Shown one piece after another: positions 7,165 through 17,078 of a stretch of DNA of 64,000 bases. The stretch spans positions 1 through 64,000 of the forward strand of contig CDRNVI010000052.1 of assembly GCA_977017575.1 (NCBI GenBank). Reading direction: 5' to 3'. Every line of letters begins with the position of its first letter. Within the stretch, counting starts at the first letter, position 1. Source of the DNA: Paramoeba atlantica (taxonomy: Eukaryota > Protista > Discosea). Both the position numbers and the translations under genes were made by a program. The notes beneath the pieces are model-generated. The model saw nothing but the letters and a program-made list of their open reading frames with translations, had not been told where the DNA came from and ran no database searches.

Positions 7165-8526
7165 ATGGAAAAACTTCACTCTGAGTATGAAACCGGCACG
7201 TTCTGCGTCGAGCTCGCCATTCTAAGCCTACATTGTGCTTCGCTGCAGCGCAACAAGGTATACCGTGTGTGCTGGGTGCGTGGCTCCAACGGGGGCAAGA
7301 CCCCATATATCGAGTGCATGGACCGTGGCGTGCTACAACTCTCTCCTACCCCCTTGTTCCGCTTCACTACACATCTCAAAAACGCCCCCAAACAGCTCAA
7401 ATTTAAAATCGAGGAATATCTCTCCCCCAAAGATACAGAAAAGCCCGCCAGAGTCTATGTGGTGCAGTATAACTTGCAGAATGCTCACCCTCGGGCACAG
7501 CGCCCAACCCACCCCAACGTCGCGGAGCTACGGTTCTACATGGGAGCCTCCGATGCCGTGCTGCGGTTTTACTGTCTGTTGTACCGAGAGAAGCACGGCC
7601 GTCCCCCACAGCGGCTGTTTACGGACTCTGGAAACGGCGTAGAGACTCAGCGCAATCAGGGGAGTCGTTCTCCAATTTCTCCGGAACAAGAATTGCCGCA
7701 AACAAATTACAACGGGGGTCGTTCAGAGGGTTCGCCAAACAACCATGTGGAAAATTTATCGCGTCGATTGGATCATCTGCAGCACGCGTTTGCGGAACTG
7801 CGTCAGGAGGTTCGTGGGTTGAAATCGGAGCTGGAAGTTCTTCGCGGCGGGAGAGCGCAGGGTCCAGTAGTCTTAGAAAAAATGAGTGACCTGGCCACTT
7901 CGCAAGCTCCGTTTGGTGTGACATCCAAGAAAACAGAGGTAATGTCGGGGAATACGGCCACTCAACAAAGTAATACAAAACCCGTTGTCGAAGGCCGGTG
8001 GCGTTCCTTGTCCTTTGGGGAGCCCAGCAAGAGCATGTCAAGCATACCGAGTAATCTGAGCTTTAGCTCGACTCACACCGCACCGCCGAAAACGTCGTTC
8101 GACCTTGTTGACGCGGACGAGTTCAAGTTTGGTAGCTCAGATGAGTCCTCTGAAAATGGAGACAAACCAAATAGCAGAGCAGGATCCGTTGAGCGGATGG
8201 TTGGGTCGGATAACACGTTCACAATACAGCCTGCTAAGGAGATCAAAACTAGTGAAATTTTAGCTACATCGAAATCATACGATACAGAGAGCTCCAAACT
8301 GCAGCAGAGGGAAGCCAGCGACAGCAACATCAATCTTCATGAAGATATGTTTTCATCGTTGGCCTCACTTGCAGTGAATGTTCAAAGTGTTTCACGGACG
8401 TCGAAGCCGAATTCGGAGGGTGATCAAGCACCAACAGTTGGAAAGAGCAGCTCCGGACTTTCGAAGCAGAACGGCACGGAACAGAAAAGCCCGCAGGATT
8501 GGGCTCGTTTTCTTGACTCTGTGTAG
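7165..8526 (+). CDS. Hypothetical protein, possible N-terminal NT-C2 (EEIG1/EHBP1-like) domain, coiled coil, Ser-rich tail
   Basis: 453-aa ORF; FCVELAILSL...VYRVCWVRGSNGGKT resembles NT-C2; LSRRLDHLQHAFAELRQEVRGLKSELEVL is a coiled coil. Confidence 0.6.
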   Translation: MEKLHSEYETGTFCVELAILSLHCASLQRNKVYRVCWVRGSNGGKTPYIECMDRGVLQLSPTPLFRFTTHLKNAPKQLKFKIEEYLSPKDTEKPARVYVVQYNLQNAHPRAQRPTHPNVAELRFYMGASDAVLRFYCLLYREKHGRPPQRLFTDSGNGVETQRNQGSRSPISPEQELPQTNYNGGRSEGSPNNHVENLSRRLDHLQHAFAELRQEVRGLKSELEVLRGGRAQGPVVLEKMSDLATSQAPFGVTSKKTEVMSGNTATQQSNTKPVVEGRWRSLSFGEPSKSMSSIPSNLSFSSTHTAPPKTSFDLVDADEFKFGSSDESSENGDKPNSRAGSVERMVGSDNTFTIQPAKEIKTSEILATSKSYDTESSKLQQREASDSNINLHEDMFSSLASLAVNVQSVSRTSKPNSEGDQAPTVGKSSSGLSKQNGTEQKSPQDWARFLDSV

Positions 8527-8776
8527 ATCACCAGCCAATACTGCCTGTGAGAATCTTGAGAAAATGCTCATCTACAGAGTTGAGTCTATACATTGTCATA
8601 CATTGTAGTTCCTCTTATGCAACACAAATCCAAAGACCATAGCACGTAATTCATGTCCTTTTTCGTTATGATCATGCTTTTTTATGGCTAGGTATGATTT
8701 TGCGATTCATCTCCATTATCGATCCTCACATTTTTTTTCTTATCTTGACCCCTACCTCCTTATTTCCCACCTCCCC

Positions 8777-11700
8777 ATGCGTCGACTCTACCCCAAACTC
8801 CCCTCCCCCCTCTCCACTACCCCTTTCCTCCTACGACACTTCACCGATGCCACGCAATCCCGCAAACCTCACCCCCACGAATCCTTCGTCAACGGACTCC
8901 AAACCGAGTTCCTTGACAACCTTCTCACCACGTGGCAAACCACCCCAGCGGCCGTCGACCCCTCCTGGCACCCCATCCTGGAAAAACTCACCCATGCCCG
9001 TCCAGAGGATCCCTTAGTGAAATCCTTTGACCGCTCCCAGGCTCTTGCTCAAGGCTCTGCGCTCGAGGACACGCTCTCTTCCACTTCTGAAACATCTTGT
9101 GCTGCTGCTGCGGCTGCGGCTTTAGCCTCTCGCAAGGACATCATGGATCACTTCAAGGTGACCTGGATGATACGTGCCTATGAGGTCCGTGGACACCGCA
9201 TCGCGGATGTGGACCCGCTGGCCCCCGTGGGAGATCGGGACACGACCCGGGCCCATGAGCTCCAGCTGCAACACTTTGGGTTTCAGGAGAGTGATTTGAG
9301 CCGTGAGTTCCATATGGGGGTAATCCCCGCTCTTGGGGGGATACACGCCGCGAATCAAAAAATGACCTTGCGTGCGATTGTGGAGAAGCTCCACAAAACG
9401 TACTGTCAGAAGGTAGGCTATGAGTTTACCCATATTGTGGATGCGCGTCGGGCACGGTGGATGCGGGAGCGTATTGCGGCACCGCAGCCCCCGACGGTGG
9501 CGGAGAGAAAGGCGTGTTTGCATGATCTTGTGCGTACGTTCTCGTTTGAGCGCACGTTGCTTTCGGAGTTTGCGGACGCGACACGGTATGGGATTTCCGG
9601 TGTAGAGGTACTGATTCCGGTAATGAAACTGCTGGTGCGCCACGCCGCCGCGAGTGGGGTGCGGGAGATTGTGATTGGCGGCACCCACCGGGGGCGGTTC
9701 AACATGCTCGCCCACGTACTGAGCACCGACATGGGGTTTGTACTGCAGCAGCTGTACGATCACAAAAACGGCACCCCCCACCGCACCGAGTCCCGCGACA
9801 TCCTCGCCAACCAAGGCTACGGCCTCGAACGTGCCACCCTTAACGGTGACCGCATCCGTCTCACCCTCCTCCCCAACGCCACCCACGCCGAGAGCGTAAG
9901 CCCCCTCGTCGCGGGCTACGTCCGTGCCCGACAACACTACGACCAAGCCGACCCCCACCGCACCCGTACCCTCGCCGTCCTCCTCCACGGCGACGGCGGT
10001 TTCGCCTCCCAGGGGGTCGCCTACGAGACCACCGGCCTCTCCGACCTCCAGTTCCACAACATCGGCGGCACCCTCCACCTGGTCCTCAACAACCGTCTCG
10101 CCCACACCGCCTCCCCCTCCCAGTACCGCGGCCCCACCGCTGCTGCCGCCTGCACCAACCTCGCCCTCCCCGTCCAGGCCCCCGTGTTCCACGTCAACGC
10201 GGACGACCCCGACGGGGCCCTGCGGGTCGTGCGGCTCGCGCTGGACTACCGCGGGGCGTTCCACCAGGACGCGATCGTGGACCTGGTGTGCTACCGGGCC
10301 CACGGCCACAGCGAGACGGACGACCCGACGGTGGCCCACCCGCAGCTGTACCGCACCGTCGCGCGGCACCCCGACGTGCTGTCGCAGTACGCGGGGCGGC
10401 TGGTGGGGGAGGGGGTGGTGGGGGCGGGGGAGGTCGGGGGGGTGGAGGCGGGGGTGAACCGGGAGCTGCGGGGGGCGCTGGCGAATGTGAAGAGGGGGAG
10501 CGTGAGTGGGTGGGAGAGGGGGGCGAGGGCAGGGGGTACGGGGGCGGGGACGACGGCGACAACGGTGGTGGGGGGGAGTTGTGTGGCGTTGCCGGGGGTG
10601 ACGGGGGTGGGGAGGGAGGGGTTGCGGGATTTGGGGAAAAGGTTGGCAAAGCTGCCGGAGGGGTTTGATCCGCACCCGACGTTGCGGCGGATTTTGGAGG
10701 AGAGGGCCAAGCATTATGATTCTGGGGAGGGGTTGGATTGGGGAGCGGCGGAGGCGTTGGCGTTTGCGTCGTTGCTGCAGGAAGGGGTTCATGTACGGGT
10801 CAGTGGGCAAGATGTCGAGCGTGGGACGTTTTCTCACCGGCACGCGCTGTTGGTGGATGTGAACACTGCGAAGGTGACCATTCCGCTGGCGAATTTCCTG
10901 CCTGGGGTCCAGGCCCCGTTTCGGATTGTCAACTCCTCGTTGTCGGAGTATGCCGTCTGTGGATATGAGTTAGGGTATAGCACGGCGAATCCGAATGCGG
11001 TCGTGATCTGGGAAGCGCAATTTGGAGATTTTGCAAACGGTGCCCAGGTGATTTTCGACCAGTATCTGAGCTCCATGGAGTGGAAATGGGGTACCGCTGT
11101 GACTGGGTTGGTGGTGAATCTCCCCCATGGGTACGACGGCATGGGCCCGGAGCACTCCAGCGGGCGAATTGAGCGGTTTCTACAAGGTAGTGATGATGAC
11201 GAGGAGCTCCCGATGGCGTTGCTGCGCAAGAACCGCGTCTTGCTGCGTCAAGTCTCTGAGAATCGTGACCTGAACTTGCTTTACCCCGTGTTGGAGGACA
11301 TGATTCGCACGTACAACTGGCAGGTGTGCTTCCCCTCGACGCCTGCGAATTACTTCCACGTGCTACGAAGACAGGTGCACCGTGCTTTCCGTAAGCCGTT
11401 GATTAATTTTTACAGCAAAGCGTTTCTCCGAGCCCCAAACATTTCCAGCTACGCCGAGATGGGGACCGGTACGCTCTTCCAGCCGATCATCGATGACCCA
11501 AGCGTGACGCACTACGACAAAGTTAAGAAGGTGATCTTGTGCACGGGGCAAATCTATTTCCATCTAAGAAAGCACCGCGACAGCAGCAAAAAAGCGTGTA
11601 AATTGGCTTTGGTACGATTGGAACAACTCTCCCCCTTTCCGTGGCTACACGTAGATGCCGTGCTCTCTCGCTACCCGAACAAAGTGGCTATCTCGTGGGC

Positions 11701-11896
11701 CCAGGAGGAGCCCATGAACATGGGAGCGTGGAACTACGTAGAGCCCCGGCTACATAATCTCCTCTCTTTCCATCACAGGAAAACTACTGTTCGCTACGTG
11801 GGACGACCGCCCGCGGCAGCCAGCGCAGTGGGAGCGAAATCCATGCACGATGCCGAGATCGCGCGGTACTTAGAAGAGGCTATGAGCGGTATTTAG
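8777..11896 (+). CDS. OGDH: 2-oxoglutarate dehydrogenase E1 paralog 1 (N-half motifs degenerate, C-half intact)
   Basis: AYEVRGHRIADVDPL, HRGR, HGDGGFASQG, SGQDVERGTFSHRH, NSSLSEY, WEAQFGDFANGAQ, PHGYDGMGPEHSS, WAQEEPMNMGAW. ORF open from 8684; 8777 (MRRLYPKL, presequence-like) is the likelier start. Confidence 0.95.
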   Translation: MRRLYPKLPSPLSTTPFLLRHFTDATQSRKPHPHESFVNGLQTEFLDNLLTTWQTTPAAVDPSWHPILEKLTHARPEDPLVKSFDRSQALAQGSALEDTLSSTSETSCAAAAAAALASRKDIMDHFKVTWMIRAYEVRGHRIADVDPLAPVGDRDTTRAHELQLQHFGFQESDLSREFHMGVIPALGGIHAANQKMTLRAIVEKLHKTYCQKVGYEFTHIVDARRARWMRERIAAPQPPTVAERKACLHDLVRTFSFERTLLSEFADATRYGISGVEVLIPVMKLLVRHAAASGVREIVIGGTHRGRFNMLAHVLSTDMGFVLQQLYDHKNGTPHRTESRDILANQGYGLERATLNGDRIRLTLLPNATHAESVSPLVAGYVRARQHYDQADPHRTRTLAVLLHGDGGFASQGVAYETTGLSDLQFHNIGGTLHLVLNNRLAHTASPSQYRGPTAAAACTNLALPVQAPVFHVNADDPDGALRVVRLALDYRGAFHQDAIVDLVCYRAHGHSETDDPTVAHPQLYRTVARHPDVLSQYAGRLVGEGVVGAGEVGGVEAGVNRELRGALANVKRGSVSGWERGARAGGTGAGTTATTVVGGSCVALPGVTGVGREGLRDLGKRLAKLPEGFDPHPTLRRILEERAKHYDSGEGLDWGAAEALAFASLLQEGVHVRVSGQDVERGTFSHRHALLVDVNTAKVTIPLANFLPGVQAPFRIVNSSLSEYAVCGYELGYSTANPNAVVIWEAQFGDFANGAQVIFDQYLSSMEWKWGTAVTGLVVNLPHGYDGMGPEHSSGRIERFLQGSDDDEELPMALLRKNRVLLRQVSENRDLNLLYPVLEDMIRTYNWQVCFPSTPANYFHVLRRQVHRAFRKPLINFYSKAFLRAPNISSYAEMGTGTLFQPIIDDPSVTHYDKVKKVILCTGQIYFHLRKHRDSSKKACKLALVRLEQLSPFPWLHVDAVLSRYPNKVAISWAQEEPMNMGAWNYVEPRLHNLLSFHHRKTTVRYVGRPPAAASAVGAKSMHDAEIARYLEEAMSGI

Positions 11897-12077
11897 GGTT
11901 CGCTGTGTCTTCAGCAGGGAAGTGCTAATTTTAGATTGAGAATTCTGAACCATTTTTTCATGTAATTCAATGCATTTTTTTCGTTTCTTACGTTCCCTTA
12001 ATAATTAAATTTTGTGCTGATAATCTGTTTCTTCCAACTGTCCTATTGAAGCGCTTTGTGATACAATGTATACACCA

Positions 12078-12126
12078 ATGACACGTTACATCACTAGGCA
12101 CTATGACACGTTACATCACTAGGCAC
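12078..12126. repeat. 25-bp direct tandem duplication between the two E1 genes
   Basis: ATGACACGTTACATCACTAGGCAC(T) x2. Confidence 0.9.
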
Positions 12127-12252
12127 AAATAAAATGCGCTTTTCATCAGCCCTTCTGACGACTCTCCATTATTTTTACCACAAAACAGTATTTTTCTTCT
12201 TTCTCTTCCACACTTCCTCTTCCATTCTTCCTCCCCCCTCTCCCTTCCTTTC

Positions 12253-15234
12253 ATGATGCGACGCGTCACTCCCCGTCTCCACACCGCCACTCCCCGACGC
12301 TACCCCCTCCACCCGTGCGACAACTTCCTTACCCCAGAAAACGCCTCCTATCTCGACACCCTCCCCCCAGACACCGCCCCTCCCCCACCCCACCCTACCC
12401 CCAGCCTCGATCCCCCCACCTGGGCCTCTCTCCTTCACAAAGCCGATGACCTCCCACGAGAGCAGCCGTTGCTACGCTCCACCTTTCGACCGCTCTCTTC
12501 TTCTTCATCTTCTTCTCATCCCCACAAATCTTCTTCCCCTTCTTCTCTTCACAACGTTTCTGTGAACTACTCTATGAGCGAGGCGGCACGGCTAGCCTGG
12601 ATGTGTCGCGCCTGGCAAGTCCACGGTCACCTCACCGCCACCCTTGACCCGTTGAATTTACACCAAGGCATGCTGCGGATGCCCGACTCCTTTGGGGTGC
12701 GCGTGGAGGAACTCGAGCCCGCGTACTTTGGATTCACCGAGGCCGACCTCGAGCGCTCGTTTTATCTCGGCATGTCCTCCACGAAAGGGGGACTGCTCGG
12801 GGAGGACACCACCATGACCCTACGGGAGCTCCATGCGAAGTTAAAAAGTATTTATGGACAGAAAATTGGGTACCAGTTTATGCATCTCGCGGAGCCGGAG
12901 TGTGCAAAATGGTTCCGGGATCGGATCGAGACCCCGGAGCACTATCCGGAGTATTTGGGGTTCTCCACGGAGGAGAAGCTGGATGTGCTGCATCACCTGG
13001 CGCGTGGGGAACTCTTCGAGCAGTTTCTCCACACGAAATTTGTCGGGAGTAAACGGTTTGGGCTGGATGGTGGGGAGTCGCTGATTCCGGGGATGATGGA
13101 AATGATCCAACGCGCGGCCTCTCATGGGGTGGAGCACATTGTGTTGGGGATGCCCCACCGTGGGAGGCTATCGGTACTCACCAATGTGTGTGGGAAATCC
13201 ATGGAGGCGCTTTTTAAGGAATTTAAGGGACTCACGCTGGATGATATGCAGGGTGAGGGTTCCGGAGATGTGAAGTATCACTTGGGGATGACTAACCGAC
13301 GGGTGTTGAAGAATGGCAGCGCCATCCAGCTCAGTCTGCTTGCGAATCCAAGTCACCTTGAGGCGGTGAACCCGTTAGTGGAGGGTAAGGCACGGGCGAA
13401 GCAACACTGTCTTGGGGACACCTCCCGGGACCGGGTGATGGCCGTCCAGCTGCACGGCGATGCGGCGTTTGCGGGCCAGGGCGTGTGCTACGAGACCATG
13501 GGTCTCGGCGAGTTGGAGTCATTTAGCACTGGGGGAACCATTCATATTGTGGTGAACAACCAGATCGGGTTCACCACGGACCCGAAAAAGTCACGCTCCT
13601 CCCCGTATTGCACCGATCTCGGGCGTGTGTTTGGGTGTCCGGTGCTGCACGTGAACGGGGATAGCCCAGAGGACGTTGCCCGGGTGTTTCGCCTGGCCGC
13701 AGATTTCCGTAAAGAGTTCAAAAAATCCATCATCGTCGACCTCGTGTGCTACCGCCGCTTCGGCCACAACGAGACCGACGAACCCATGTTCACCCAACCC
13801 CTCATGTACCGCGCCATCAAAAACCACCCCACCATTCTCACCCAATACACCCAAAAACTCATCTCCGAGAACTGCATCACCCCGGAAGAAACCCAAACCC
13901 TCCACCACACCATCACCCAAGCCCTCCGCGCCTCCCTCACCCACCTCGACGCCTACACCCTTACCAAATCCGAGTGGTACGACTCCTACTGGAAAAACTT
14001 CCGCAAGGCCTCCCATGTCTTTGCCAAGCTCTACCCCACCCAAGTCTCCGGGGAGGTCCTCCGCGAGCTCTCCACTCTGGTCATCCAAGTCCCCCCGCGT
14101 ATTGCGCTTCACCCGAAGTTAGCCTCCCTGTTCAAGGCCCGGCAGCACACGCTGGACACCGGCAAGGGGATCGGCTGGGCCACGGCAGAGGCCCTGGCCT
14201 TTGGGAGTCTCCTGCAGGAGGGGATCCACGTGCGGCTCAGTGGGCAGGACGTCGCGAAGGGGAGCTACCACCAGCGGCACGCGGTGGTGCGGGACGCGCT
14301 GACGGGGGTGGAGTACAGCCCGCTGAAGAACATGTCGAGTGGACGGTTCGTGCTGTGCGACAGCCCCGGGGGGAACTACGGGGTGCTGGGGTACGAGCTG
14401 GGGTACTCCATGGAGAGCCCACAGGCGCTGGTGATCTGGGAGGCCCCGGAGGGGGAGTTGGTGAACAGTGCACAGATTGTGGTGGATCAGTTTATTGCGT
14501 CCGGGGAGGCGAAGTGGGGTCGGCAGTGTGGGTTGGTGGTGGCGTTGCCGGTGGGGTGTGAGGGGGAGGGACCGGATTTGTCGGGGGCTCGGGTGGAGAG
14601 GTTTTTGCAGGCGGTGGATGAGGAGGTGGCGGAGGATGCGGAGGGGTATGGGCCGAATTCTCATGCGAGGGTGAATATGGAGGTGGTGAGCCCGACGACG
14701 CCGGCGAATTACTTTCATTTGTTACGGCGCCAAATTCATCGGAATTTTCGTAAGCCGTTGGTGTTGTTCCTGCCGAAGACCACCGTAGGTAGTGCAAAGG
14801 AGGAGTTGGTGGATTCTGAGTTCGCCCCGGTGATCGCGGACGAGGCACGCTGTTCGCCGGATGCCGTGACAAAGGTGGTGCTGTGCTGTGGTCCGTTTTA
14901 TTACCGTCTGTGTGAGGCCTTGTCAGACCTCTCGAAAAAGGACGTCGTACTGGTTCGTGTCGAACAGCTTGCACCGTTTCCCGACCGCCTTGTGAAGAAA
15001 CAGCTTGAGCGATTTCCTAAGGCAAAGGTGGTGTGGGCTCAGGAGGAGCCGCGGAATATGGGCGCCTGGAGTTATGTCCGTCCGCGAATTAACGCCGCAC
15101 TACGCTGTGGGAAAAGGAAACATTCCGAGTTACAGTATCGAGGACCCCGGGCATGCTCCGTGGTGTGTACCGGGGACAAGCACATATTCGCACAGCAGCA
15201 AAAACAGCTTGTTAAATCAGTGTTCGACGAGTAG
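12253..15234 (+). CDS. OGDH: 2-oxoglutarate dehydrogenase E1 paralog 2 (N-half intact, C-half motifs degenerate)
   Basis: KRFGLDGGESLIPG, GMPHRGRL, SGDVKYHLG, ANPSHLE, HGDAAFAGQG, NNQIGFTT, YRRFGHNETDEP are canonical; the C-half has DSPGGNY, WEAPEGEL, PVGCEGEGPDLSG. Confidence 0.95.
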   Translation: MMRRVTPRLHTATPRRYPLHPCDNFLTPENASYLDTLPPDTAPPPPHPTPSLDPPTWASLLHKADDLPREQPLLRSTFRPLSSSSSSSHPHKSSSPSSLHNVSVNYSMSEAARLAWMCRAWQVHGHLTATLDPLNLHQGMLRMPDSFGVRVEELEPAYFGFTEADLERSFYLGMSSTKGGLLGEDTTMTLRELHAKLKSIYGQKIGYQFMHLAEPECAKWFRDRIETPEHYPEYLGFSTEEKLDVLHHLARGELFEQFLHTKFVGSKRFGLDGGESLIPGMMEMIQRAASHGVEHIVLGMPHRGRLSVLTNVCGKSMEALFKEFKGLTLDDMQGEGSGDVKYHLGMTNRRVLKNGSAIQLSLLANPSHLEAVNPLVEGKARAKQHCLGDTSRDRVMAVQLHGDAAFAGQGVCYETMGLGELESFSTGGTIHIVVNNQIGFTTDPKKSRSSPYCTDLGRVFGCPVLHVNGDSPEDVARVFRLAADFRKEFKKSIIVDLVCYRRFGHNETDEPMFTQPLMYRAIKNHPTILTQYTQKLISENCITPEETQTLHHTITQALRASLTHLDAYTLTKSEWYDSYWKNFRKASHVFAKLYPTQVSGEVLRELSTLVIQVPPRIALHPKLASLFKARQHTLDTGKGIGWATAEALAFGSLLQEGIHVRLSGQDVAKGSYHQRHAVVRDALTGVEYSPLKNMSSGRFVLCDSPGGNYGVLGYELGYSMESPQALVIWEAPEGELVNSAQIVVDQFIASGEAKWGRQCGLVVALPVGCEGEGPDLSGARVERFLQAVDEEVAEDAEGYGPNSHARVNMEVVSPTTPANYFHLLRRQIHRNFRKPLVLFLPKTTVGSAKEELVDSEFAPVIADEARCSPDAVTKVVLCCGPFYYRLCEALSDLSKKDVVLVRVEQLAPFPDRLVKKQLERFPKAKVVWAQEEPRNMGAWSYVRPRINAALRCGKRKHSELQYRGPRACSVVCTGDKHIFAQQQKQLVKSVFDE

Positions 15235-15425: not shown

Positions 15426-17078
15426 TTGGACAAACATTTTCATCCGAATTTTCGGATTCTTGTTCAGAATACGCATGCAATTATTCTTTGTTTTGGTTGT
15501 CTTAGGGATACGCTTGCCTACGTTTTTTGTATCACTAATTTTGCCCTTTTGCATGTTCACCAGTGGGTCACGGCGGGCCACGGTGGGTCCAGCATATTAT
15601 GCTTTTGCACCGAGCAAAACTGCGAGCTGTGCCTGTCAGGAACACTTCTCCGGTTGTGCATTTGCTGCCGTCATCTGTGGTACCCTTTGCTCCATCAAGT
15701 AGACTTCGCTGCTGAAACACTGGATTCACTTGTCAGCTCACAAATTTGCTCTCGCCAAAAAACGTATTTTGAGTATGTGACCAAGACAGTAGTCCCGTAC
15801 TTACGTTCTTTAGGAACACCCTCCGATGTTTTCCTCTCACTGGAACTGCTGGAATTAAGGGTTAAAGAGTGTTTAGGTCATCGAGAACTTTTTATCCCGG
15901 AATCGGGAGCTTATAGCGGTTGTACAAAACGTTTCTCGTATTCAGATCGAGCATGTGGCGATGCTTCTATGCGGTACTCCGGGTGGAAGTTATTTGCTGT
16001 TCGATTGCCTAATGCTTTTGTAGCGAAGAGCAGTCGAATGTTATCTTCACAAAGAGCCATACGGCGTAAGAAAAAATGGCCAATTAAGATTGACTGCAGC
16101 TTTCCTCCTTCAAACTCTGCACCACTTTTCATAGAGTGGAAACTTAAAAATGCCACCTTACCTGTTTGGAATACACGCGTCAAAACGCTTAAATTTCTAC
16201 GATCGGGGTATTGCAACAACGACAACGTCGCGTTACTCTACCGTGTTTGTCACTACTGTCTGAAATATGGAGCGCCTAGCAACGTATACTGTCCGCTGGA
16301 AATCTTTTCGTTAGATTTTTCTCGCGCATGTCGAGCAGTCGCATCGCTTCTGCTGGATTATTTATCCTATTCTCGCGCGGTACCGTGTCAGTCCATGAAC
16401 AGCAGAGAGAGACTAAGAGCAAGACAAGATTTTTCTGATACACTAACTGAAACAAATGTCGGTAGGTGGCCTATCACACTGCACACTCCTATCCCATCAA
16501 GCTACGAAATACTTCACACTATTCCGAGGATCATTGAAATACTGTTTCAAAGTCGCATCCTGCCTTCTCTACGGCTTGCACAACAACGAAACCGATTTAC
16601 CGCACACGGCTTGCTGTGTCTAGAAAAAACGTTAGAAAATCTTATTTTGGTCGAAGGCAGAGAATCCGAAAATTACTTGCGTTTCATGCATGATTGTCTT
16701 ACGCACGTTCTCGAATCGCCTACCGAATTCCCTATTTGTCACCGCACACCAAATAAAAAAATATTGTGCGAAGAACTGATAAATGAAGAAACTAATAAAT
16801 GTGAGACTAGTGCAAAAGCCGTTATGTCAAAGTCCAATGCAAGGAGTTCCAAAGAGTTGCTTCAAAACCTGCAGGCGCTAATCTACAAGGCTAGAGAAAT
16901 TTATTTCCTTGCCACTTCTGTACGTGACTGCAGTGTTCTCATGGTGGTCCCTTCCTTTTCCCAGGCTGTTTCCCTTCCGACTGTGTCACTCATCGATTTC
17001 GATGACAAAAGCCACAAAGGACTATTACATTATGTCAAGCAAGAGATCGCACTATGTAAAGAGTATCAGAACGCTTAG
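15426..17078 (+). CDS. Hypothetical protein, start uncertain
   Basis: 550-codon open frame in AT-rich sequence on the coding strand; track start is TTG and the first in-frame ATG is far downstream. Confidence 0.5.
   Translation: MDKHFHPNFRILVQNTHAIILCFGCLRDTLAYVFCITNFALLHVHQWVTAGHGGSSILCFCTEQNCELCLSGTLLRLCICCRHLWYPLLHQVDFAAETLDSLVSSQICSRQKTYFEYVTKTVVPYLRSLGTPSDVFLSLELLELRVKECLGHRELFIPESGAYSGCTKRFSYSDRACGDASMRYSGWKLFAVRLPNAFVAKSSRMLSSQRAIRRKKKWPIKIDCSFPPSNSAPLFIEWKLKNATLPVWNTRVKTLKFLRSGYCNNDNVALLYRVCHYCLKYGAPSNVYCPLEIFSLDFSRACRAVASLLLDYLSYSRAVPCQSMNSRERLRARQDFSDTLTETNVGRWPITLHTPIPSSYEILHTIPRIIEILFQSRILPSLRLAQQRNRFTAHGLLCLEKTLENLILVEGRESENYLRFMHDCLTHVLESPTEFPICHRTPNKKILCEELINEETNKCETSAKAVMSKSNARSSKELLQNLQALIYKAREIYFLATSVRDCSVLMVVPSFSQAVSLPTVSLIDFDDKSHKGLLHYVKQEIALCKEYQNA

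Follow-up and report, generated by a model that had tools for sequence, protein, structure and literature searches.

In the 64,000-nucleotide stretch of DNA analysed here (the window: contig CDRNVI010000052.1 of the Paramoeba atlantica assembly GCA_977017575.1, positions 1 to 64,000 of the forward strand), two paralogues of the E1 component of 2-oxoglutarate dehydrogenase (E1o), which we term par1 and par2, lie in tandem and have decayed in opposite halves of the active site, par1 in its diphosphate-binding (PP) domain and par2 in its pyrimidine-binding (PYR) domain. We propose, with a probability that we put at roughly 0.75, that E1o functions here as a par1/par2 heterodimer, with one site complete and the other dead, which arose by reciprocal degeneration of the tandem paralogues. 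The nearest relatives are prokinetoplastids, namely Perkinsela sp. CCAP 1560/4, two further Perkinsela-like assemblies in ENA, and the free-living PhM-4 and PhF-6 (transcriptomes), and the tandem arrangement of par1 then par2 with the same reciprocal pattern is present in all three Perkinsela lineages. An initial annotation of the window had described two adjacent E1o paralogues with reciprocal active-site decay and read them as an obligate heterodimer. All of the motifs that it quoted are present, the decay also emerges from the unbiased column test given below, and the heterodimer reading is supported by the residue comparisons.

The proposal builds on the known architecture of the E1o family. 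In the homodimer, as described with the structure of DHTKD1, each thiamine diphosphate (ThDP) site is built from both subunits: one chain holds the diphosphate with its alpha/beta1 (PP) domain, and the other holds the pyrimidine with its alpha/beta2 (PYR) domain (PMC7340257). The initial annotation was right in assuming a site combined across the subunit interface. A Glu on the pyrimidine side is essential for ylide formation, acyl transfer involves two His residues, one in loop 3 on the pyrimidine side and one in loop 2 on the diphosphate side, and an R/R-D salt bridge spans the twofold axis (PMC7340257). Both par1 and par2 contain the Pfam domains E1_dh, Transket_pyr, and OxoGdeHyase_C, that is, the full E1o architecture, and both match human OGDH with E ~1e-190; among PDB sequences, par1 matches the chains of human OGDH, E. 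coli SucA, M. smegmatis KGD, and DHTKD1 with E values of 1e-145 to 1e-190. The ThDP/Mg anchors are kept in both proteins (HGDGGF...NN and THRGR in par1, HGDAAF...NN and PHRGR in par2). The activating Glu and the QFGDF pyrimidine pocket are present in par1 (SLSEY, WEAQFGDF) and lost from par2 (PGGNY, WEAPEGEL), in which the PYR domain also shows PHG to PVG and GPEHSS to GPDLSG. Conversely, the PP-side substrate and transfer residues (RFGLEG, the GDVKYH His, NNQIGFT, and GHNE) are complete in par2 and incomplete in par1. By descent par2 is thus a member of the E1o family, one that, judged by its residues, is without the set needed for a self-sufficient enzyme.

The reciprocity was quantified in an alignment of 383 full-length E1o homologues at 32 named active-site positions, each invariant in at least 96% of the sequences except for one with a looser consensus. 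At these positions par1 is changed at 6/17 in PP and 0/15 in PYR, and par2 at 0/17 in PP and 12/15 in PYR, while the three Perkinsela pairs give 7-10/17 and 0/15 for par1 and 0/17 and 10-11/15 for par2. None of the 383 homologues outside the window and Perkinsela pairs approaches such reciprocity. Cherry-picking of motifs was considered as the source of the pattern and is countered by a Fisher test on every alignment column with conservation of 95% or more in 375 other E1o proteins, 135 columns in total. Here par1 deviates at 18 of the 58 PP columns and 1 of the 54 PYR columns (p = 2e-5), and par2 at 1/58 and 14/54, the activating Glu among the latter (p = 1e-4); the sole PP deviation of par2 is also found in PhF-6 and Trypanosoma melophagium. 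The Perkinsela orthologues behave in the same way (par1, 21-25/58 PP and 1-3/54 PYR; par2, 1/58 and 18-23/54), and p ranges from 1e-4 to 5e-8 across all eight window and Perkinsela proteins. Eight controls, taken from free-living prokinetoplastids, trypanosomatids, a diplonemid, and Dictyostelium, have 0-3 deviating columns per domain. The reciprocal pattern is far beyond chance.

We now put forward a hypothetical mechanism in which the two kinetoplastid E1o paralogues underwent reciprocal degenerative change in the common ancestor with Perkinsela, leaving a heterodimer with two unequal sites. Site A, formed by PP of par2 and PYR of par1, would have every canonical residue, including those for ThDP/Mg binding, for ylide formation (Glu), for 2-oxoglutarate binding (His residues), and for reductive succinyl transfer to lipoyl-E2 (the loop-2 and loop-3 His). 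Site B, formed by PP of par1 and PYR of par2, would be catalytically dead because the activating Glu, the pyrimidine pocket, and several of the substrate and transfer His are missing, and we speculate that it may hold ThDP-Mg by means of the GDG...NN and HRGR anchors of par1. The initial annotation had anticipated such a rebuilt site and, indeed, a complete set of residues is obtained only by combining PP of par2 with PYR of par1 (0/17 and 0/15 changes), as is also the case in the three Perkinsela lineages. A homodimer of par2 would be dead because its activating Glu is gone. Since the PP side of par2 is intact at every residue although the protein has lost its own Glu, par2 would have to pair with a chain that supplies an intact PYR domain, for which par1 is the only candidate. 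The earlier claim that neither homodimer is active is therefore probable for par2, which lacks the Glu, and would apply in a narrower form to par1, which keeps the Glu and the ThDP/Mg anchors and whose homodimer may be inactive toward 2-oxoglutarate only.

The distribution of the decay gives the mechanism a place in time. In a maximum-likelihood tree the euglenozoan clade contains two well-supported kinetoplastid paralogue clades, and hence the duplication is older than the split between prokinetoplastids and metakinetoplastids. The par1 clade unites a Leishmania protein and two related metagenomic or assembled sequences, PhM-4 with a metagenomic sequence, and the window with Perkinsela; the par2 clade contains PhF-6 with the window and Perkinsela and eight more sequences including T. 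melophagium. The two E1 genes that the initial annotation had attributed to trypanosomatids are Tb927.11.9980 and Tb927.11.1450, which the tree places as orthologous to par1 and par2. Outside the window and Perkinsela, every sampled member of the two clades, trypanosomatid and free-living prokinetoplastid alike, is canonical in both halves, and diplonemids are also without decay. A kinetoplastid-wide split of the site, which the initial annotation had raised as a question, is thereby rejected: on this tree the duplication is kinetoplastid-wide and the decay is confined to the clade of the window and Perkinsela.

Within that clade the decay can be followed in each half separately. Trees of the individual halves place a burst of change on the stem of the decayed half only, with short tips after the burst; the stem lengths are 0.71+1.13 for the decayed paralogue vs 0.08+0.23 in the N-half, and 0.59+0.74 vs 0.12+0.30 in the C-half. 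A long-branch artefact joining the window to Perkinsela is ruled out, as the window is also sister to Perkinsela in trees of the intact halves alone, at Shimodaira-Hasegawa-like approximate likelihood ratio (SH-aLRT) values of 92 and 87 and with the sister clades at 99. The window and Perkinsela have identical derived states in par2 (F to Y in TFS, S to G in HSS, and the C-terminal H to F) and in par1 (F to L, and N to S in GHNE), and these common states therefore point to a single origin of the decay in the common ancestor of the window organism and Perkinsela. The order par1 then par2 in one transcription unit is kept in four lineages, the window and the three of Perkinsela, and the Leishmania orthologue of par1 has no adjoining E1 gene. 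Synteny also extends to the next gene, which directly follows the pair and encodes an Ins_P5_2-kinase (15426-17078 in the window; L001:13031-14308 and L005:9008-10168 in the Perkinsela-like assemblies); in Perkinsela CCAP 1560/4 (L002) this gene was not called at that place. The spacers in the window are about four times as long as those of Perkinsela (357 bp vs ~90-100 bp). Past the presequence, the proteins have paralogue-specific N-terminal motifs (...FTDA-T-(V/I)RKPH..E in par1, ...VP(P)RRPLH..DSFL in par2), which are retained from prokinetoplastids to trypanosomatids and are located in the region that binds E2/E3 in human E1o.

Both genes, including their decayed halves, are under purifying selection. 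All eight open reading frames (ORFs) of the four lineages are intact despite saturated synonymous divergence, and for the closest pair of Perkinsela lineages the ratio of nonsynonymous to synonymous substitution (omega, or dN/dS) is 0.08-0.13 in every domain, the decayed ones included; the ratio is unusable between the window and Perkinsela, where dS is saturated. Contigs from independent sequencing runs of the window organism cover both genes with zero frame breaks, and 21 of the 26 coding differences in these assemblies are synonymous and 5 are non-synonymous. One run (X2) has an in-frame 3-nt indel in the Ser-rich, low-complexity N-terminus of par2 (~12505, codons ~80-100), where the predicted local distance difference test score (pLDDT) is <50. 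Both proteins are predicted to keep the full E1o fold. Specifically, the AlphaFold2 models have a mean pLDDT of 83.8 (par1) and 84.9 (par2), the PP domain of par1 is mostly at 87-97 with dips at two active-site loops, the PYR domain of par2 is at ~85-96, and the par2 model superposes on solved E1o structures (SucA/OGDH/KGD) with template modelling (TM) scores of 0.92-0.94. The twofold-axis salt-bridge residues R, R, and D (equivalent to R712/R715-D677 of DHTKD1) are present in 8/8 of the window and Perkinsela proteins. In addition, the tables of the Perkinsela genome paper list E2o together with the alpha and beta subunits of succinyl-CoA synthetase (SCS); under K00164 they hold only this E1o pair, on two allelic contigs, and no third E1o. 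This argues that the pathway is needed in Perkinsela and that there is no spare E1o. An obligate heterodimer would fit all of these features, that is, the purifying selection, the kept fold and salt-bridge residues, the retained E2o and SCS, and the lack of a third E1o in Perkinsela.

Several points weigh against such a heterodimer. That par1 and par2 interact physically and that the pair is active are inferred from the sequence pattern, its distribution, selection, the predicted fold, and the gene context. The RNA evidence is thin: a single run, probably of RNA, gave two short contigs that cover par2. Only for Perkinsela is the lack of a third canonical E1o documented. Moreover, par1 keeps HRGR, GDG...NN, the His of the PSHLE type, and its own Glu, and a par1 homodimer could bind ThDP and have residual or altered activity. 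The latter leads to an alternative that we regard as improbable though worth weighing, in which the par1 homodimer is an active ThDP enzyme with a pocket remodelled for another 2-oxo acid and par2 is a non-catalytic scaffold or moonlighting protein. In keeping with this, QFGDF and both transfer His are retained in par1 in addition to the ThDP anchors and the Glu, only substrate-side residues are changed, and dual localization and possible moonlighting are reported for one E1 of T. brucei (PMC9512073). However, convergence would be expected of a pocket under new selection, whereas the changes in par1 differ between the window and Perkinsela (K-Y-H to L-A-N vs A-Y-Q, NNQ to NNR vs NNE, and F to H vs N), which therefore favors loss of constraint over a new specificity. 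A new role for par1 would also leave unexplained why par2, without a Glu of its own, has 17/17 of the PP catalytic residues and 57/58 of the PP columns. It is very improbable that both proteins act outside OGDH catalysis in some other role, for example one that is structural or related to kinetoplast DNA (kDNA) or glycosomes, as proposed for other trypanosome OGDH subunits; moonlighting of OGDH subunits is reported in T. brucei (PMC9512073), but such a role does not explain why, in each of the four lineages, the pair preserves one full set of catalytic residues and no more than one. Least credible is relaxed selection on an OGDH complex that is being lost from a reduced endosymbiont or parasite, with both genes becoming pseudogenes: Perkinsela is indeed a reduced endosymbiont and many near-invariant residues are gone from both genes, but pseudogenization is rejected by the omega of ~0.1 in all domains and the 21:5 ratio of synonymous to non-synonymous polymorphism, and it is at odds with eight intact ORFs at saturated dS, perfectly conserved complementary halves, and the retained E2o and SCS.

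The closest parallel to the proposed par1/par2 heterodimer is the deoxyhypusine synthase (DHS) of trypanosomatids, a DHSc/DHSp heterotetramer in which, as summarized in PMC10820115 from Afanador et al. (2018), a catalytic site is paired with a dead one at each heterodimer interface. From that summary, DHS resembles the E1o pair in having two impaired paralogues, active sites at the interface, and activity that comes from mutual complementation, also in a kinetoplastid. It differs in belonging to another enzyme family that uses NAD rather than ThDP, and in having been demonstrated biochemically and structurally, whereas for par1/par2 the complementation is inferred and the split is by whole domains (PP vs PYR) of a fused E1. 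In all four lineages, different residues of the interface active site have been lost from the two E1o paralogues in a manner complementary in trans, as in complementation of the DHS type. The canonical enzymes (E. coli SucA, M. smegmatis KGD, human OGDH, and DHTKD1 of the E1a type) share with par1 and par2 the three domains, the fold (as predicted for the window proteins), the ThDP site across the subunits, and the salt bridge on the twofold axis, but they are homodimers with two identical complete sites, whereas neither the par1 nor the par2 chain carries a complete set of residues. In the E1 alpha2beta2 enzymes of PDH and BCKDH, separate short chains supply the PP-type and PYR-type functions and there are two active sites; par1 and par2 would likewise supply PP and PYR functions from different polypeptides, but both are full-length fused E1o proteins and would form one complete site only. 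The known 'hybrid' OGDH/OADH complexes place different E1 homodimers on one E2 core, with no mixed E1 dimers (PMC8146983). In the AdoMetDC/prozyme system of trypanosomatids a dead paralogue is needed for activity, acting allosterically to relieve autoinhibition (PMC10820115); unlike par1 and par2 as proposed here, prozyme gives no half of a shared active site. The E1o pair of trypanosomatids is orthologous to par1/par2, yet both of the sampled trypanosomatid proteins are canonical in both halves.

No prior description of such a reciprocal E1o pair was found in the literature on Perkinsela and OGDH, on E1 heterodimers and pseudoenzymes, or on Perkinsela and euglenozoan metabolism. If our proposal is correct, this would be the first E1 of a 2-oxoacid dehydrogenase to have become obligately heterodimeric, with just one of its active sites complete, and, to our knowledge, the first fused homodimer-type ThDP enzyme of such a kind. 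It would be a clean and datable case of reciprocal degenerative complementation within one shared active site, with a burst on the stem followed by purifying selection, and it would offer a natural means to ask if a single ThDP site suffices and what the second one adds. To judge from its residues, the ThDP/Mg anchoring in the dead site could serve as a non-catalytic cofactor site, structural or regulatory. If so, nature would have supplied a ThDP enzyme with a single site, of relevance to the debate about half-of-the-sites reactivity and active-site communication. The annotation of both Perkinsela genes, filed simply as 'E1 component', is also corrected. More tentatively, and on balance we think it doubtful, the par1/par2 heterodimer might date back to the ancestor of all kinetoplastids and be the form that E1o takes throughout them, including the trypanosomatids with both halves still intact; the window and Perkinsela would then expose it by the decay of one site (constructive neutral evolution). 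One lead is that both paralogues are kept across kinetoplastids with their paralogue-specific N-terminal motifs. Another comes from T. brucei, for which the methods for the 'delta-kdh-e2' mutant, in which KDH flux is abolished, name Tb927.11.9980 as the deleted gene (PMC7951978), which is listed elsewhere as an E1 component, E2 being Tb927.11.11680 (PMC12589498, PMC8648117). If the identifier is right, and it may be a typographical error, loss of one E1 paralogue alone abolishes KDH flux. There is reason to ask whether the E1o paralogues of Trypanosoma and Leishmania act only as a heterodimer, which would alter how this drug-relevant complex is modelled.

The coordinates of the two genes, their domains, and the drifted motifs are collected in the table.

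Table. Features of the par1-par2 locus, in positions of the window.
Feature	Position	Strand	Remarks
par1, E1o paralogue	8777..11896	+	1039 aa from 8777 ATG; PP drifted; PYR and C-terminal domains canonical
par1 PP (E1_dh) domain	9545..10495	+	decayed; four drifted motifs; HRGR and GDG...NN kept
par1 drifted motif TRYGISG	9581-9601	+	
par1 drifted motif RDILANQG	9794-9817	+	KYH His lost (to Asn)
par1 drifted motif NATHAE	9875-9892	+	own His kept
par1 drifted motif NNRLAHTA	10088-10111	+	
par1 PYR (Transket_pyr) domain	10730..11428	+	fully canonical; ERGTFSHRH, SLSEY (activating Glu), WEAQFGDF, PHGYDGMGPEHSS
par1 OxoGdeHyase_C domain	11444..11884	+	canonical; 0/17 conserved columns changed
par1-par2 intergenic spacer	11897..12252	+	long pyrimidine tract and AG upstream of par2 ATG; read directly from the sequence
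par2, E1o paralogue	12253..15234	+	993 aa; PP canonical; PYR decayed
par2 PP (E1_dh) domain	13015..13932	+	fully canonical; KRFGLDG, PHRGR, GDVKYHLG, NPSHLE, HGDAAF...NNQIGFTT, RFGHNE
par2 PYR (Transket_pyr) domain	14167..14784	+	decayed; twofold-axis R..R and D kept
par2 drifted motif AKGSYHQRH	14254-14280	+	ERGTFS to AKGSYH
par2 drifted motif PGGNY	14365-14379	+	activating Glu to Asn
par2 drifted motif WEAPEGEL	14437-14460	+	QFGDF to PEGEL
par2 drifted motif PVGCEGEGPDLSG	14548-14586	+	
par2 OxoGdeHyase_C domain	14791..15225	+	moderately drifted; 3/17 conserved columns changed

The two ORFs are intact, with no internal stops in either translation, and nearly all long ORFs in the window are, like them, on the + strand, as in a kinetoplastid polycistron. 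The par1 frame is open from 8684 (8684-11896, +), and the ATG at 8777 is the likelier start because the N-terminus then aligns with that of Perkinsela par1 and a pyrimidine tract and AG lie just upstream. The pyrimidine tract and AG in the spacer look like a kinetoplastid trans-splice signal. An Rfam scan of the window gave no matches. Directly upstream of par1, at 7165-8526, is an ORF of 453 aa without a Pfam match. The extra length of par1 is accounted for by a low-complexity insert rich in Gly, Ala, and Thr in the inter-domain linker (residues ~581-605, window 10500-10600; pLDDT <50), which is missing from the Perkinsela orthologues. The spacer also contains a tandem direct repeat of 25 nt, with two copies of ...atgacacgttacatcactaggcac at ~12078-12126, on the upstream side of the pyrimidine tract before the par2 ATG.

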